This document shows positions 8,965 through 46,270 of a DNA stretch of 64,000 bases, piece by piece. This DNA is from Takakia lepidozioides (lineage: Eukaryota; Plantae; Bryophyta). The translations under genes were made by a program, and so were the position numbers. Position 1 is the first letter of the stretch, and every line of letters starts with the position of its first letter. The stretch spans positions 3,162,001 through 3,226,000 of the forward strand of contig CM060731.1 of assembly GCA_030704615.1 (NCBI GenBank), given 5' to 3'. The notes beneath the pieces were generated by a model. The model worked only from the letters and a program-made list of their open reading frames with translations, had not been told where the DNA came from and searched no databases.

Positions 8965-11900
8965 GTGGTACAATATCCCATTCATCAATTAGTGTTCCAT
9001 TCTTCTCGAGCATCTGGCATTTAGTTTTGTTAAATCGTTCTGCCAAACCATTGCATTGGGGATTGTAGGGAGCAGTAACGGCATGCTTAGTGTTGAAATT
9101 AAACAAGACAATCTCCATAAGTTGGTTGTAGAACTCAGTACCTTGATCCGGGAGGATTTCAAGAGGGCAACTATGACGAAGTATCACCTTATCAAAAAAG
9201 AACTGCACCACCTCATCACTATCCTTAGCAACCAAGGTCGAAGCTCAACCCATTTCGTCTCCGCAAGGTATGCATGGCCCTTGGACGAGGATTTAAAAGG
9301 TCCAATTAGATCTAAGCCAACCCTGGCAAATGATTCAATCATCGGGATTGGCTGCAAAGGTAATGAAGCTTTGGTCCTAGGTAGGATGGTCTTAGCATGA
9401 CAGGGCACACATCTTGCAATGAAAGCTGAGACATCTTTAACTAAGTCTTTCCAGTGATACTACTCCTGCAATCTTTTGACAGTTTTAGCAACCCCCAAAT
9501 AGCCAGCATAAGTAGAAGCATGGTACAATTCGAGTAAAGCAGGGACAGCGGACCTAGAAGGGATTTCTACAGCAGAGGTACCTTCCAAAACAGTGATACT
9601 GAACAATCTCCTTTCACTTTCCCGGTGGCTGGGTAAGTGATAGTTGACTTGCCTCATGAGCAGCTTGGATATGCCACTAAGGTGGGTGCCGGTTTTGCAC
9701 CTATGGAGAAGAGCATCGTATAATGGATCATCCATCCTACATCATTCATGGCCACACAACAGCAGGTTGGTGCAGGCAAGAAGAAAGTGGTAGCTCCCAT
9801 TCTCTTCCTTTCGTGACCCTGACTTTATTTTCAGTTGGTTGCCTATGAGGAGACAAGCAGGTTGTAAGGTGCAGCTCAGTCCCTCGGTCGAGATACAAAC
9901 CAAAGCAGACACAAGACAAGATGAACAGTCATAAGGTAAGGGAAAGTACCAGACCCTACTGCAGGATGTCAGACTAGAATTCATGCCAATACCAAAGGAA
10001 ATTCAACCAACATCAAACTGAAGTCGATCCCAAATATCAAGCAGATCTGGAGGAACATAAGGATAGTCTAGCAAATGACACAAGACAAAGGGATCTGAAA
10101 CAGGCACAATAGGTGGTGTAGAGCGTGCAGTATGAGGGATTAGGTCATTTAAGGTAATGTAGGGGTCAGGGATTTTGGGTTCGCCTCTAGTCAAAGCATC
10201 TGCATTAACATTATCCTTCCCACGCTTGTAAGATATGGTGAAGTCATAGCCTTGCAGTATGAGAGCCCACCGAGCTAATCTGCCATTGAGTTCACGAGGA
10301 GTTAGCAAGGCTTTCAAAGGTAAATGATCAGTCTCAATGGTAAAATGACAACCATGTAAATACTGCCTAAATTATTTGACTCCAAAGATAACTGCAAGGC
10401 CTTCTCTGTCAGTGATAGAGTAATTAGGCTCATGTTTATCAAGGCGGCGGGAGGCATAGGCAATGGCATGCTCATGACCATCCTGAATCTGGCTCAACAC
10501 TGCAGAGATAGCTAAATCACTGGCATCAGTTTGCAAGATAAATGGCAAGGTAAAATCAGGATAAGCAAGCACAGGAGCAGAGGTTAGTGCAATTTTGAGC
10601 TTCTCAAGGCGGATGTTTCAGCAGTACCCCACACAAAATGAGCATCCTTAGATAACAAGCGAGTGAGTGGAGCAGCTAGTTTGACAAATTGAAAAATGAA
10701 GCGACAATAGTAAGAACCCAAGCCCAAGAAGGCCTTAACACATGTTTTATTTGTAGGGGTTGGATAGTTCCACACAGCCTGGATCTTAGTTGGATCAGGA
10801 CTGATGCCAGCAGCAGAAAGCAGATGGCCCAAGAAATGGAGCTGTTCCACACTTCTTGGCTTTAACTTTAAGCCCGGATGCACGACGTCTGCACACAACC
10901 CGCTATGAATCCAGTAGATGAGCATCAAACGTTGTAGAATAAATGTTGATGTCATCAATGTAAGCACACTCCCAACGAAGGTTTCCTAAAACAATGTCCA
11001 TAAGGCGCTGAAATGTAGCAGTGGCGTTGCAAAGGCCAAAATGCATTGTTAATTCAAATTGGAAGAGGCCCATCCTACAGGTGAAGGCAATTTTCTCTTT
11101 AGCAGCAGCAGTTAAAGGAACTTGCCAAAAGTCAGAGGCTAAATCCAATGAAGAGAAGATCTCATTAAGTTGATCTAGCGTTTCGTTAATACGTGACAAA
11201 GGGTAGACATCTTTCTTTGTGATGGCATTTAAACGCCGAAAGTCTACACAAAAACGGGTTGAGCCATCCTTCTTGCCAACTAAGACAATGGGACTGGCCC
11301 AAGGGGATATGGAGGGGGTGATCACACCAGCATCAAGCATCTTGGTAGTCTCTTCATGAATGACTTTGCGCTCACGAACACTCTCTCTATAAGCATGTTG
11401 TTTGATAGGCTTACCATCCGTGATGATGTCATGATCCAGAGTGCGGCCTAAGTCATGGGGCCCTTTACTAAAGATGTCGAGATTGTCACGGAGAAACAGG
11501 TGGAGGCGACTAATCCGCTGGGGAGTAAGGTGATCACCCACTTTGACATCCTTTAAGACCTGTTGGAAATGTTGCTCGTGTTCAGGAGTAAGCGTGTCAT
11601 TGCCAGTGGAGCCCGAGTGAGAGGCAAACGTCTGGAGTTGGTCAACGGGGGAGTCCACCAGTCCAATATCATGAAGACTGAGGCCTTTCTAAACAGAGGC
11701 CAACTTAGACAAAGGAGAAGCAGTGAGCCTAGCAAGGACCTGACCCTTGCGGACACTCAGAAGCAATCAGACGGTGCTTTTGTAGGATAAGTTTTTTCCA
11801 GCCTTCAACTTCAAGGAAACGACTTGTAGGGCAAGCAAAAACTAAGCCTGTAGGCACTATGCACTGAGAAAAAGCTGGGATAATGAAGTCAACTGGAGAA

Positions 11901-13718
11901 CGTAGCAACATGGTATTCTTTGCCACAGGCAAGGGAGGTCCAGACTTCTTACCTAGTGGAGGGAAATGCCATTGGTACAGATTATCACCAAGTGGTTGGA
12001 ACTGGCTGAATCTTGAGACGAGAATAGTTGGCCATAGAGGTCTCAGCGGCAATAGTAACATGGCTTAGACTCACTTTGTAAGGTTATCCCTCACCATTGT
12101 GAAGGCACATAAGATTGTTCATGACGTCAATGTTGGCCTCTGCACCCTTCATCCAATCCAGTCCCAGTAAAATTTGTTTACCCATGGTGACAGTGCAGGT
12201 CAGCAAGACTGTTTTCCCACTAATGCAGATAGGCAAGGTGACCAACCCTATGGGTTCATATGCAGTGCCATCAGCTTTGGTAACTTCAAGGCCATGGGCA
12301 GGGCTAATTTTTAATCCAAGAATGCGAATTGTACTAAGTGGAATGGCAGACATGGTACATCCAGTATCAATAACACATGGAAAGGAAAGGTGGCCCACAT
12401 GACATTGTGTCATCAGTGGGTGGATCTGGTCCCTACTGATGTGCTTATAGGCCTCACAGTGCATGAGTTTGAAATCACGAGAAAGAACAACACTTACCAT
12501 CGTTTTGGGGTTCTTACCATGGTCATTTGGCACCCTCACAGACGACTGGGTTCGTTTAAAGTACCCCTCTGTTTTTTTGTCTCTTTGCAACTGTTCAATC
12601 AGAGCAGGTAAGTCAGATTGGTAAGGGCACCACCTGATGTAATGCTTAGTGGACTTGCAAATCATGCATGCCACCACGGAAGTCCTGGCTTCATGACGAA
12701 TGCCAACATTGGTCTTACCTTGAGGCCCATTTCTGGCAGCGACTATAAAGTTCCATCCTACGTCGGCTTTGAAGGCTTGAAGTTCTCCCTGGATTTCATT
12801 ACGAAAAGATGACAACTCATGCACAATGGAAGGGACCAGATCTTCTGCAATACCTTTCACCCCAGTCCCCATCAGTATGCTCTACATAGTTACCATCACT
12901 AGCCAGATGAGTGTGTTTTGTGTTGGTAACTTTAGACAGGCCTGCCTTGGCAGCTTTGAGACGTAACCTTTCTTCAATCAATTCCACCATCTCATCTTAA
13001 GCGGTGTAAGTCTGTTTTTGCATAAACACTTTCTCAACAGGGGGCAAGCCCTTTACAAAACAATGTTTCAAAATAGCAGGTCTCTCTGAGGCAATTAGAA
13101 TTGACTTACAGATTGCAGTTCGCAAGTCAATGTAGTATTTCCACACACTGTCGCCATAATGAAATTTTCAGTCTGGTGTGGTGTAAGCTATGGGCTTTTC
13201 TTCACGAAAGAGCTTGCGAGCCAATTCTCCAGCTTCTACCAAAGTAAGATCATTTTTGTCCTTAATATTGGACTCTCCCTTGAGACAGATTCGAAAAGAC
13301 TTTACTTGGAACCGTGGGGAACACCATTCATTTCAGTGCTGATTTCAAAAAATTCCAAGAAGGACTCAAAATCCTTCCCTAAGTTGTACTCAGGGTATTG
13401 TTACTTAGGTATTCGCTCCCCATGATCAGTTTTCTGTGGAGTGGTATCCGGAACTTCAGTTTGTTTCAGCAACATCTTCATAAGCGGGGGGCAATTTGAA
13501 ATCACCCCCATGGCTTCACACAGCTCGTCCAAATCAAATGTGGGTTGAGGCACAGTTGCCGGATCCTTGTGATCTCTGGACGACTCTCCCATTTCCATAT
13601 TATTTCTTTCATTAGTTGTTGTCTCTTCCCTCTCCTCCGCTGCACGTTTTTCCAACTCACTTAGTCCCATCGTCTCTTCTGCTTCTCTCTCTAGCATAGA
13701 TATTGTAAATACAGGCAT
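8965..13718 (-). mobile_element. Ty3/gypsy gag-pol (gag, Zn knuckle, protease, dUTPase-like, RT, RNase H, integrase core), decayed
   Basis: CxxCxxxxHxxxxC (CMICKSTKHYIRWC), protease VIDTG, [29 protein letters not shown] and YIDD, RNase H FILQTDASD, integrase LDLIGP, DQGTEF and YNPQCNGLAERFN; order PR-RT-RH-INT; many frameshifts and stops. Confidence 0.95.
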
Positions 13719-33898: not shown

Positions 33899-35641
33899 TT
33901 AAGGAGATTGAATAGTGAGATCACTGAACGAAGCAACATATGGTAAGCCAAGACCATGCCATTTTCCAGTCCATGCACCTCCTTCTACAACCGATGCATT
34001 CCACACAGATGCATACAAGAAGACATGTTTTGTTGGATATGGCTTGTTTTGTTGAATCTGTTGAACATGCCGAACTGTCCTTACTAGTTTCTCATCCACA
34101 AACCATTGAATCCGATGTCTGCTATAATGGATTGTATAGGCATGAAAATCCTTAGAGCAATCAAAATTCAAATCCACCCAATGTTCGTGGCCCCCCACAC
34201 CATTCACATAAAAATTTGTCTGCACAATATATTTGTTGTTGCCAAGAAACTCAAAATCAATTTCATCTTGTACATGACTCCCTTCCGATGATGACAAATA
34301 TAGACTTGTGAGAAGACCACTAGTATCACCCGGTGGGCACTTCACATTTCCTCTGAATGTACCTACTGGATAGCTTTCCAGTGATCGAATTCGTCCGCCA
34401 CATCCAAAATGATCGAAAGAAATGGTGAATTCGTTTCCTCTAACATAGATGTTCGATGCACAATAGTCAATCACCATAGGATTCATGGGTACCGGAACAT
34501 GTGACCATATTGTTGCTTCTGGAGGTGGTTCCCATAGGCCTCCAAAGAGAGGCGATGTTATCATCAGATTTGTGTAATACATGTGAAATGGACTTTGATC
34601 CCAATTGATTTTTCCGGCCCATAGCCCATCTGCTACATATGATGCATCCCAAGTGTAGCCATAAATGTGACCAGCCTTGGTTGGATATGAATTTCCAAGT
34701 GTATTTGTTAAAGTGCGAAGTATCACAGTATCGACTATCCACATAATGCTTTCTTTATCCCATTTGATGGTGTACTCATGAAACTTTGCAGACGTATCAA
34801 ATTCCATTGCATAGGTTTCAAGGGTCCCGACATGATTACCATTTACAGCGTAACTAGTAAGAATTCTACTAGGAAAATTACCAATAAAATCAAAGCTGAT
34901 AATATCACTAGAGTCATCGTTGGACGAGATGTAGAAACTACTACTAACTCCGGATGATCTCATAGGACAACGCATGTGGATAGTGAAAACACCAGATGCA
35001 AACTTGGTTCGCGAATGAAACTTTCCACCACAATATTTGTCTAGGCGAATAGTTGCAGCACTTCCTTGGAGATCAATATGGTTGGGACAATAGTCCACTT
35101 GCATTTCATCCATACTATAGGATATTGTAGAAGGAAAAACACTTATTTCTCCCATGTGACCAGATGTACCGCGTCTTTCCCTCATGCCTTCAGTACTCGA
35201 AGAGATGATAGGTTGAGCCATATTAGATGGAATTGTACCATCCATTTCATCAACGATAAGATTTGCTGAAGACTCATGAACCCTTTGACTTATCTTTGTT
35301 CGAAGGCCATTTTCTTCTTGGCCTTCTTGTGTCTTTATATCACCTAGTTGTTTTCTACAACTATCTACCGATGTTTCTACCATGAGGAGTTGTTCCACTG
35401 CCTCATTATGGCTTCCACTAGAAAGATAATTCTCTATTTGACCCAAACTTGACTTCATAGACTGTAACTGAGTCTTGCAAATTTCTTCAAATAATTCTGC
35501 TCTTTCATCGTCTTCTACAAGACGCGATTGTGTGTTGTCAATTTGCATAGCTGAAAAGTTCAGAGTATTTGATTTCTTCATGGAAACAACTGAGACTACA
35601 AAATGCAACATAGTTGACAATAAAAGTAATAATCTAGACAT
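33899..35641 (-). CDS. Intronless 580-aa protein: signal peptide, helical PMEI-like segment, two tandem GH16 EG16-like domains (first degenerate, second with intact catalytic motif)
   Basis: Hydrophobic N-terminus. Domain 2: IDYC...CPPGDTSGL..LYLSS.EG..QDEIDFEFLG..IVQTNFY..FDCS..FH..LYASVWNAS..WTG..PY. Domain 1 aligns but reads DIISFDFIG. Confidence 0.9.
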   Translation of the reverse strand: MSRLLLLLSTMLHFVVSVVSMKKSNTLNFSAMQIDNTQSRLVEDDERAELFEEICKTQLQSMKSSLGQIENYLSSGSHNEAVEQLLMVETSVDSCRKQLGDIKTQEGQEENGLRTKISQRVHESSANLIVDEMDGTIPSNMAQPIISSSTEGMRERRGTSGHMGEISVFPSTISYSMDEMQVDYCPNHIDLQGSAATIRLDKYCGGKFHSRTKFASGVFTIHMRCPMRSSGVSSSFYISSNDDSSDIISFDFIGNFPSRILTSYAVNGNHVGTLETYAMEFDTSAKFHEYTIKWDKESIMWIVDTVILRTLTNTLGNSYPTKAGHIYGYTWDASYVADGLWAGKINWDQSPFHMYYTNLMITSPLFGGLWEPPPEATIWSHVPVPMNPMVIDYCASNIYVRGNEFTISFDHFGCGGRIRSLESYPVGTFRGNVKCPPGDTSGLLTSLYLSSSEGSHVQDEIDFEFLGNNKYIVQTNFYVNGVGGHEHWVDLNFDCSKDFHAYTIHYSRHRIQWFVDEKLVRTVRHVQQIQQNKPYPTKHVFLYASVWNASVVEGGAWTGKWHGLGLPYVASFSDLTIQSP

Positions 35642-43919: not shown

Positions 43920-45418
43920 TCAAGTTTTCAGCATGTGCTTCATGTGCTTCAGTCTACACCACTCGCGTGCGTCATCTGTTTGCTGCTTTAGATAGTCGTC
44001 CATCCACGCCGTCTCCCTCTCACCCAAACACTCTTCTTGCAGCGGCACCACAAAGTGCGACCTTTCAAGCTTTTTGGCGAGGTAATTCTCGACCAATTGC
44101 TTCACAGCCATCCCCCGCATGATGGTTTTTTTCTTCACGATCAAGTTCACCCCTATCTGTTCTATGCTGGTTGGACGTTCAACTCTGTTCGAGTAATGTG
44201 CTATGTTTCCACCGTGAAAGAGCAAGGTGGTTCCGGGCTTGGGTCGAAAGTGGATCTGAATTTCGGGGAAGACAAACTGTCCCCCTTCAATCTCGCCCTC
44301 CCCTGTAACATCATTCAACATCCACGACAACAAGGTGAGTTGACACGGAGCATTTGGGTTTTGAGTTTATGTGGAGTATTTGGGTTTGAGATGTCATATT
44401 GGCGGTGCAGAGATTTCACCTCGATGAAACCAGACGATGAAACTGTGAAATTCGCCATGATCCACGTGTGCATCCACTTCATAATTCTGGGTGATACTCA
44501 TGCACGTGAAACATGTACGCCCCAGTCGAGTCCAATCGAAGGGAACGCCGGTCTGCTTTTCTTCGAGGGCAGTCATCCAAGAATGGTAGTCTTCTTTAAG
44601 TTTCTCCTCCATGTATTCCGCAAATTCTCCAGCGATCTGCTCGATCTCCTCTGCGGAGGGTTCTTTAACCCGCCTTCGGTTGTGGACGTACCTGAGAAGC
44701 CAGGAAACTCCAAATAACAGTCAGGAATATTAAGGGTGTAAGTGCTCAAAGAAGAATTGACGAGCTGAAGCTGGGCTGCGAGGAGGTCTCTGGTGCTTAT
44801 GAAGTCTGCAACACTAGGGAGAGTTGGGAGAGTTTGCCACATGATGTGCACTTACGCTGAGAGAATGCCGTCGTTGCGTGAACATCTCTTGCCACACATT
44901 ACTGTGCGTCCGGAAGCCTTTCCCTTGCCCCTGGTGACCACCCCTGCAACCTGAAACAAAAAATTAAGGATCTCGGCATGATGATCGCATATCTCCTTGC
45001 TCATGCTGTCGTGCAAGATTATGGCCAACACTTTTCCACTCTCTACGATCACAGCGCTCTCTTTAATCTCACACGATCTTTCGAAGTCTACACTTTTTCC
45101 TGTCCTGACTTCCACAACTGTGATGATGGCGCTGGGAATGGAGATGCCCTCCCTGCGTAAGGCGCTCAACTGATATTGGCTGTCTTGAATTGAAAGTATC
45201 TTTGGCTCAAACTTGCGCTCTATAGTTCCTCGGAGTAGTTTGAGTGCCAATATGCCATTGGACAGCCAGTTGCCCATCTGATCAACAGCCCCCAGTAGTC
45301 TTAAGCTTCCTGTGCGCTTCTTTCCAGTTCGAAAGTTGTGCGAAACTTTAGCGGGCAATCGTGAAGAGATTCCGACCTTTGCTAGTGGATGCTGGCGAGC
45401 GGCTACCTTCTTCCTCAC
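43920..45418 (-). CDS. TET/JBP-like Fe(II)-dependent dioxygenase; core exons 45418-44856, 44691-44420, 44302-43920 (405 aa); 5' exons unresolved
   Basis: Two canonical GT-AG introns (phase 2, then phase 1) give one open frame: GRTVMCGKR...AYV, FTCMSITQNYEVDAHVD (HxD), FIVWF, GGQFVFPE...PGTTLLF...IAHYS (distal His), QIGVNL. Confidence 0.75.
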
Positions 45419-45865: not shown

Positions 45866-46270
45866 TTATGATTGGGTCAAGCGGTCAGGGGGATTGTTCA
45901 CCTGACTCTGTGGGAGGAGGCCAGGCGAAGACTTTTGTAGGTCTGAGGAGGTGACCGCAGTGTCTGATCTGTACTGAAAGCTGCTTGAGACAGGGGGGTT
46001 CACCACCAGGCTCTGCAAGCTCGATGGGAGGAGGCCAGCCGAAAACTTGTGTGAATCTGTGTAAGTGGCCACAGCGTCTCTGTACAGGAAGTTGCCTGAA
46101 GTCTTGGGTTTCTCCACCAGGCTCAAGCTCTCTATAATCTGTGACGGTTTCCTCTTCGTCGCTAATCGAACATCGCTGCCTCCACCATCCCCACTCAAAA
46201 GCTGGGCAACATCAGTCTCGGGCACCGCTATTTCTTCTGCCACGCATGCTTCGTCTTCACCTGGATACAT
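45866..46270 (-). CDS. Possible upstream low-complexity exon of the TET/JBP-like gene
   Basis: 134-aa ORF on the same strand with a plausible acceptor near 46291; I could not splice it cleanly to the core exons. Confidence 0.25.
   Translation of the reverse strand: MYPGEDEACVAEEIAVPETDVAQLLSGDGGGSDVRLATKRKPSQIIESLSLVEKPKTSGNFLYRDAVATYTDSHKFSAGLLPSSLQSLVVNPPVSSSFQYRSDTAVTSSDLQKSSPGLLPQSQVNNPPDRLTQS

Follow-up and report, generated by a model that had tools for sequence, protein, structure and literature searches.

A gene on the minus strand of Takakia lepidozioides contig CM060731.1 is best read as an intact gene of three, possibly four, coding exons that encodes a CMD1-like Fe(II) dioxygenase of the TET/JBP superfamily, the product being predicted to belong to the group of these enzymes that acts on DNA bases. 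We place the probability of this reading, which draws on sequence comparisons and the modelled fold of a related protein, at about 0.6. The DNA analysed (the window) is a stretch of 64,000 nucleotides, positions 3,162,001-3,226,000 of the contig, and the gene occupies positions 43920-45418 of that window.

Exon-intron structure

An earlier, sequence-only reading of this locus had joined three open reading frames through GT..AG introns into a single open frame, and the coordinates and phases of that join are borne out. Exon 1 (45418-44856, minus strand), assigned from splice sites and a collinear profile alignment, encodes the domain's N-terminal strands together with a motif of RGxxxASG type and the sequence GRTVMCGKR, and ends two bases into a codon. 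It is followed by intron 1 (44692-44855, minus strand), 164 nt in length and of the form GTAAGT...CAG, with the donor GT at 44855-44854 and the acceptor AG at 44693-44692. Exon 2 (44691-44420, minus strand) contains an arginine cluster that is a candidate equivalent of CMD1 R244, then helices, an S-I-T-Q-N strand, the HVD sequence at 44468-44460 and IVWFHR, with the tryptophan at 44432-44430, and ends one base into a codon. Intron 2 (44303-44419, minus strand) is 117 nt long, of the form GTGAAA...ACAG, with the donor GT at 44419-44418 and the acceptor AG at 44304-44303. Exon 3 (44302-43920, minus strand) encodes GEIEGGQFVFPE, the distal histidine at 44198-44196, a glutamine at 44159-44157 and a C-terminal helical tail before a TGA stop. 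The HVD and the distal histidine are where they had been placed, and each of the motifs that had been listed, GxxxMCGxR, FxVWF, GGxFxFP and PGxxLLF, is found.

Retention of intron 1 leads to an immediate stop (TAA) and retention of intron 2 to a stop nine codons on. Since the frame is open across both joins and is stopped by either retained intron, a full-length product needs both splices. The spacing at the joins can be compared with relatives described below. Across the first, 17-19 residues separate the glycine of the GK/GY motif from the catalytic arginine, and the distance is 20 in both the metagenomic protein P0001 and the viral protein L003. At the second, exon 2 ends at position 244 of a profile of the P0001 family and exon 3 begins at 243-245.

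All stop-to-stop fragments of the window on both strands (n = 2,731) were searched with two separate profiles. With the P0001-family profile, made from four intronless relatives, the three exon fragments rank 1, 2 and 4 of the 2,731, covering profile positions 40-133, 207-244 and 243-321 in collinear order and abutting exactly at the second junction. With a profile of nine viral Tet_JBP proteins, five of which were scanned against Pfam and all five of which scored above the Tet_JBP threshold, they rank 1, 2 and 3 and cover positions 34-87, 190-217 and 227-256, again collinear; exon 2 is the top match of this profile in the window (E 0.0019). That two independent profiles pick the same three fragments in collinear order puts the exon model beyond chance. 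On the opposite strand, a 226-residue open reading frame (44037-44717, plus strand) faces exons 2 and 3 and intron 2, and is probably a by-product of the composition of the coding strand.

The N-terminus

The sequence-only reading gave the product as 405 residues. A frame of 405 codons is indeed open across the three exons, but its first codon is a GTG that abuts a CAG acceptor (AG 45420-45419), and GTG is no eukaryotic start. The N-terminus would be provided either by an ATG at 45277 or by an upstream exon spliced on. The ATG at 45277-45275 is the first in frame, would give a product of about 358 residues, and sits six residues ahead of the position that matches Met1 of P0001. It is the likely translation start within exon 1, judging from this alignment.

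We infer a candidate upstream coding exon at 45902-46270 (minus strand), which would run for 123 Ser/Pro-rich codons from an ATG at 46270 to a donor GT at 45901-45900 and would be spliced to exon 1 in phase 0 through the acceptor AG 45420-45419. Neither a homologue nor a Pfam match was found for this segment (46270-45902). If spliced on, the exon would add a Ser/Pro-rich region and would also bring into the protein a basic, NLS-like stretch that is encoded in exon 1 upstream of the ATG at 45277. A 134-residue open reading frame immediately upstream contains, at 45906-46124 (minus strand), a tandem duplication whose units of about 112 nt are 73-77% identical to each other and code for a Ser/Pro-rich repeat; this frame is a possible extra 5' coding exon.

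The lack of an ATG at the head of the 405-codon frame would fit a different view of the locus, that it is a silent relic: a recently inserted or inactivated transposon-borne copy, whose intact appearance would reflect only its youth and which would lack both expression and catalytic competence. Set against this are some 358-405 codons open over three exons, with canonical splice sites in the correct phase. We consider such a relic unlikely, though with an appreciable share of the probability, and return to it with the active site and the base composition of the exons.

Relationship to TET/JBP proteins

The exons were used singly in every search and alignment, and no joined protein was employed. 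The comparison with TET/JBP profiles that had been proposed for this gene gave a mixed outcome. Exon 3 does match Pfam PF20515 (Tet-like 2OG-Fe(II) oxygenase, 2OG-FeII_Oxy_6), weakly, with E 0.018 and 15.5 bits, but the cut-off is 27 and, exon by exon, the match falls below threshold; exons 1 and 2, scanned singly, have no relevant Pfam match. Against the PDB (phmmer), exon 3 alone finds CMD1 at E 0.37, exon 2 alone finds nothing and exon 1 alone gives a chance match only.

An exhaustive search of 1.84 billion protein representatives with exon 3 returned a single match, P0001, with E 6e-7 and 40% identity. No plant protein among these representatives matched exon 3, the proteins of this genome itself probably being absent from the collection, although annotated proteomes from other plants are expected in it. 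Word-index protein searches with exons 1 and 3, whose length window leaves out full-length relatives, gave no match either. P0001 is a protein of 332 residues encoded on a metagenome contig in the ENA and has three close relatives only (P0003, P0004 and P0005). Aligned pairwise, exon 3 matches it with E 7e-17 from P0001 residue 247 onward, and exon 2 matches residues 209-243 with E 1e-4 (BLASTP). Two scans of the JGI metagenome contig collection, one with a degenerate family pattern and the other with exact exon-3 words, produced no relative.

P0001 provides the link to characterised enzymes. A profile of its family finds the Chlamydomonas CMD1 (PDB code 7cy4) at E 3.3e-9, and the addition of window exons 2 and 3 and one viral Tet_JBP protein improves this to E 3.8e-12 with a longer alignment; CMD1 is the only protein in the PDB that the profiles match. 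In language-model space 26 of the 30 ESM Atlas clusters nearest to P0001 carry Tet_JBP. The proposal that the motif series is TET/JBP-like is thus upheld through P0001 as an intermediate, with the algal CMD1 as the closest relative of known structure, and these sequence and model comparisons support assignment of the window gene as a CMD1-like member of the TET/JBP superfamily.

Four groups of known proteins can be set beside the gene. The first is CMD1 of Chlamydomonas reinhardtii (5mC-modifying enzyme 1; PDB codes 7cy4-7cy8), an ascorbate-dependent 5mC glyceryl transferase. The distal histidine and the sequences S-x-T-x-N...V..H-x-D, I-x-W-F-H-R and GG-x-F-V-x-P are common to this enzyme and the window gene. 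For exon 3 the identity with CMD1 is about 39% over some 36 residues, counted by eye, in an alignment that spans residues 2-50. The second is the P0001 family (P0001, P0003, P0004 and P0005, all from ENA contigs), which contains the closest sequences, 39-40% identical over exon 3 and collinear over the whole domain. Its members differ from the window gene in being intronless as called, in length (328-352 residues) and in a C-terminal KKRKH tail. They also have a two-residue insertion before HxD that is absent from both the window gene and CMD1.

The third group comprises the fungal TET/JBP proteins of DNA transposons (CcTet; PF20515; Kyakuja-Dileera-Zisupton and other elements), which are multi-copy and transposon-linked (PMC12730594). 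PF20515 supplies the direct match to exon 3 noted above; the window gene has no significant sequence match to the fungal proteins and no transposase gene within about 5 kb. The fourth is formed by the Tet_JBP proteins (PF12851) of phages and giant viruses, collinear with the window exons over the whole domain and sharing with them RG..A.G, F(S/T)T.T.N, a sequence resembling H.DKGDF, and GE.EGG.F. The viral proteins keep an R-x-S...Y-x-R sequence, which binds 2-oxoglutarate and the base and is missing from the window gene. They are without introns and some are fused to a glycosyltransferase-like part. One viral locus, L003:2675-4768, is an open reading frame of 697 residues with an N-terminal Tet_JBP domain (PF12851, E 8e-17) and a long C-terminal part, and in the ESM Atlas its neighbours pair Tet_JBP with Glyco_transf_25. 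Relatives are encoded at sixteen further viral loci, one of them in a giant-virus MAG.

Predicted fold

The fold was assessed on an AF2 model of P0001, which is about 40% identical to window exon 3 and serves as a proxy for the window protein. The input was an alignment of 16 rows, made up of the P0001 family, one row for each of the three window exons, and nine Tet_JBP proteins of viruses. The model has a pLDDT of 76 and a pTM of 0.80; from the P0001 sequence alone the pLDDT is 34.

A Foldseek comparison of this model with the PDB gives CMD1, CcTet and NgTET1 as the 21 best matches, CMD1 being first (6e-13) and CcTet second-best. TET2 ranks behind them at about 6e-6, ahead of FTO and gibberellin oxidases at about 1e-5. 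A shape search of the ESM Atlas presents the same picture.

These rankings bear on the suggestion that the gene encodes a 2OG/Fe(II) oxygenase of the prolyl-hydroxylase or gibberellin-oxidase type, acting on a protein or small molecule and not on DNA. All 2OG oxygenases have the double-stranded beta-helix and the HxD...H triad, and the direct support that Pfam gives, exon by exon, to a Tet-like assignment is weak, both of which leave some room for such an enzyme. Against it, the PDB profile matches are to CMD1 only, and on the proxy fold about five orders of magnitude separate CMD1, CcTet and NgTET1, in the lead, from FTO and the plant oxidases. In addition the 2OG-FeII_Oxy, P4H and DIOX_N families are not matched at E up to 1 by exon 3 or up to 10 by exons 1 and 2. 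The best structural matches of the proxy, which is about 40% identical to window exon 3, are to enzymes of DNA bases and not, as had been named as counting against the TET/JBP interpretation, to oxygenases with substrates other than nucleic acids. On the profile matches and the proxy fold ranking we dropped the prolyl-hydroxylase or other non-DNA oxygenase as an explanation and regard it as very improbable indeed. A CMD1-like enzyme remains our preferred assignment.

The active site compared with CMD1

Residues are numbered as in CMD1 (PMC7854593); the MBP-fusion chain of the alignments is offset by 374. The iron ligands H345, D347 and H397 are all kept, as the HVD of exon 2 and the distal histidine of exon 3. 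The co-substrate pocket of CMD1 is formed by R244, H249, S335, T337, W358, T399, S414, V342, I356 and F371 (PMC7854593). In the window gene S335, T337, V342, I356, W358 and F371 of this ascorbate pocket are kept, T399 is changed to Ser and S414 to Asn, and H249 is without an equivalent. Exon 2 begins with an RRR cluster that by spacing corresponds to a C-R pair in the viral proteins and to P0001 R149, CMD1 being unaligned in this region, and on that spacing it is the probable counterpart of the N-terminal arginine represented by R1261 in TET2 and R244 in CMD1.

A further position that bears on the co-substrate is R410. In CMD1 this residue aligns with the arginines that bind 2-oxoglutarate in TET2 (R1896) and NgTET1 (R289) and points away from the site. 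The window gene has the glutamine at 44159-44157 here, and the arginine that would hold the 2-oxoglutarate C5-carboxylate is absent. W358, the tryptophan that blocks 2-oxoglutarate in CMD1, is conserved. With the arginine replaced and the blocking tryptophan kept, the co-substrate may not be 2-oxoglutarate, and the label '2OG' given to the enzyme in the sequence-only reading is doubtful. Ascorbate, the co-substrate of CMD1, is a reasonable guess by analogy. From the residues present we expect a protein adapted to bind iron and a flipped-out pyrimidine, and one that probably lacks the canonical mode of holding 2-oxoglutarate.

None of the residues that contact 5-methylcytosine (5mC) in CMD1 is kept, D350 being changed to Glu, F416 to Ile and R418 to Lys. 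The replacements of D350 by Glu, T399 by Ser and R418 by Lys are graded conservative. In CMD1 the D350N and R418A mutations abolish activity and F416A cuts it eight-fold (PMC7854593).

The isoleucine at F416, the asparagine at S414 and the loss of H249 cast real doubt on activity. That residues whose mutation abolishes or reduces CMD1 activity differ here (H249, F416, and R418 to Lys) adds to the case for a silent relic. On the other side, the HxD...H triad and most of the pocket residues are intact. Moreover the replacements of R410 by Gln and of R418 by Lys recur in the P0001 family, which is under purifying selection (dN/dS of 0.19 between P0001 and P0005). These two changes, common to a constrained family, are thus lineage traits and not decay, and an intact gene is the interpretation that we favour.

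Genomic context and origin

The gene is flanked by an unnamed gene at 41.2-42.3 kb (minus strand) and a TIP49/RuvBL gene at 48.5-53.2 kb (minus strand), the exons of the latter extending from about 48.9 to 53.2 kb. All three are on the same strand, and its reported location between ordinary genes is correct. Further away, at 33.9-35.6 kb, is a GH16 gene, an intronless open reading frame of 580 residues (33899-35641, minus strand) with two tandem glycoside hydrolase family 16 domains (Pfam E 4e-69). An exact look-up of this frame had no match among recorded gene products. Scanning the window for Rfam families and for tRNA genes gave no result.

CMD1 lies inside a Chlamydomonas transposon, DNA-1_cRei, and most other TET/JBP genes of that alga are in Helitrons (preprint 10.1101/2022.06.16.496473). 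DNA-1_cRei is 18.4 kb long and carries CMD1 together with a protein-kinase gene (preprint 10.1101/2022.06.16.496473), and several lineages of fungal DNA transposons carry TET/JBP genes (PMC12730594). On the P0001 contig a protein-kinase gene occurs two genes upstream on the same strand (L001:2855-3979 and L001:6135-7133), a combination of kinase and TET/JBP as in DNA-1_cRei.

The Chlamydomonas and fungal precedents favour a transposon-derived origin, for this copy by analogy only, and descent from a transposon-derived, multi-copy family is our leading view and the most likely origin of the gene. The host of CMD1 is a chlorophyte and that of the window gene a land plant, and there are no transposon hallmarks around the present copy. 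No transposase or Rep/helicase gene is located near it, and there are no transposon protein genes in the interval 42.3-48.5 kb. Repeat and self-BLAST searches of the window gave no terminal inverted repeats around the gene, and tblastn of the exons against the window located no further copy. The transposon coding sequences closest to the gene are retrotransposon reverse-transcriptase and gag-aspartyl-protease open reading frames at 10903-12872 (minus strand), about 31 kb away.

The CpG observed/expected ratio is 0.73-1.08 in the exons, as against 0.46 in the whole window and 0.38-0.49 in the flanks, which, on a small sample, would fit young or unmethylated sequence. A young insertion is what the relic described above would be, and this ratio counts in its favour.

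Another possible source is a giant virus, the locus then being an endogenised remnant or the product of some other recent horizontal transfer, and not a transposon or a gene of the plant lineage. Giant-virus-like insertions have been reported from the genomes of mosses and lycophytes. Bona fide Tet_JBP proteins, alignable with each of the three exons, are encoded on contigs of giant and other viruses, and the nearest relatives of the gene are metagenomic proteins of unassigned origin. However two spliceosomal introns lie inside the catalytic domain, which argues against a recent acquisition, without introns, from a viral or bacterial source. There is also no other virus-like gene nearby in the window, the flanks are ordinary plant genes in one contiguous stretch, and P0001 and CMD1 are far more similar to the window gene than the viral proteins are. 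A viral or other recent horizontal source is accordingly improbable in our estimation, and transposon-derived ancestry is retained as the preferred account.

Implications

Were the protein to act as CMD1 does, it would flip 5mC out of duplex DNA and modify the methyl group of the flipped base, and that modification would lower 5mC-based silencing. The copy would then be either transposon cargo still or a resident host gene. In its fullest form this amounts to an active CMD1-type enzyme in a land plant, predicted to use ascorbate or another co-substrate that is not 2-oxoglutarate and to convert 5mC to a hypermodified base such as 5-glyceryl-methylcytosine, whether as counter-silencing cargo of a transposon or as a host demethylation route beside the ROS1/DME glycosylases. 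We offer this extended proposal tentatively and with a low expectation that it holds as a whole.

Oxidised 5mC has been reported in plant DNA, and we know of no enzyme behind such reports. TET homologues are stated to be unidentified in plants (PMC11233409). The gene described here is a new member of the TET/JBP superfamily, in a lineage without a recorded one in the literature examined; an earlier mention of bryophyte copies is possible.

With an intact CMD1-like gene that contains introns, a land plant offers a definite target for cloning, enzyme assay and gene knock-out. Should the family be carried by transposons here as well, the idea that transposons bring their own anti-methylation enzyme would apply to land plants in addition to fungi and green algae. 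An active CMD1-type enzyme, if confirmed, would be the first case of TET/JBP activity in embryophytes, and its product the first 5gmC-like mark there.
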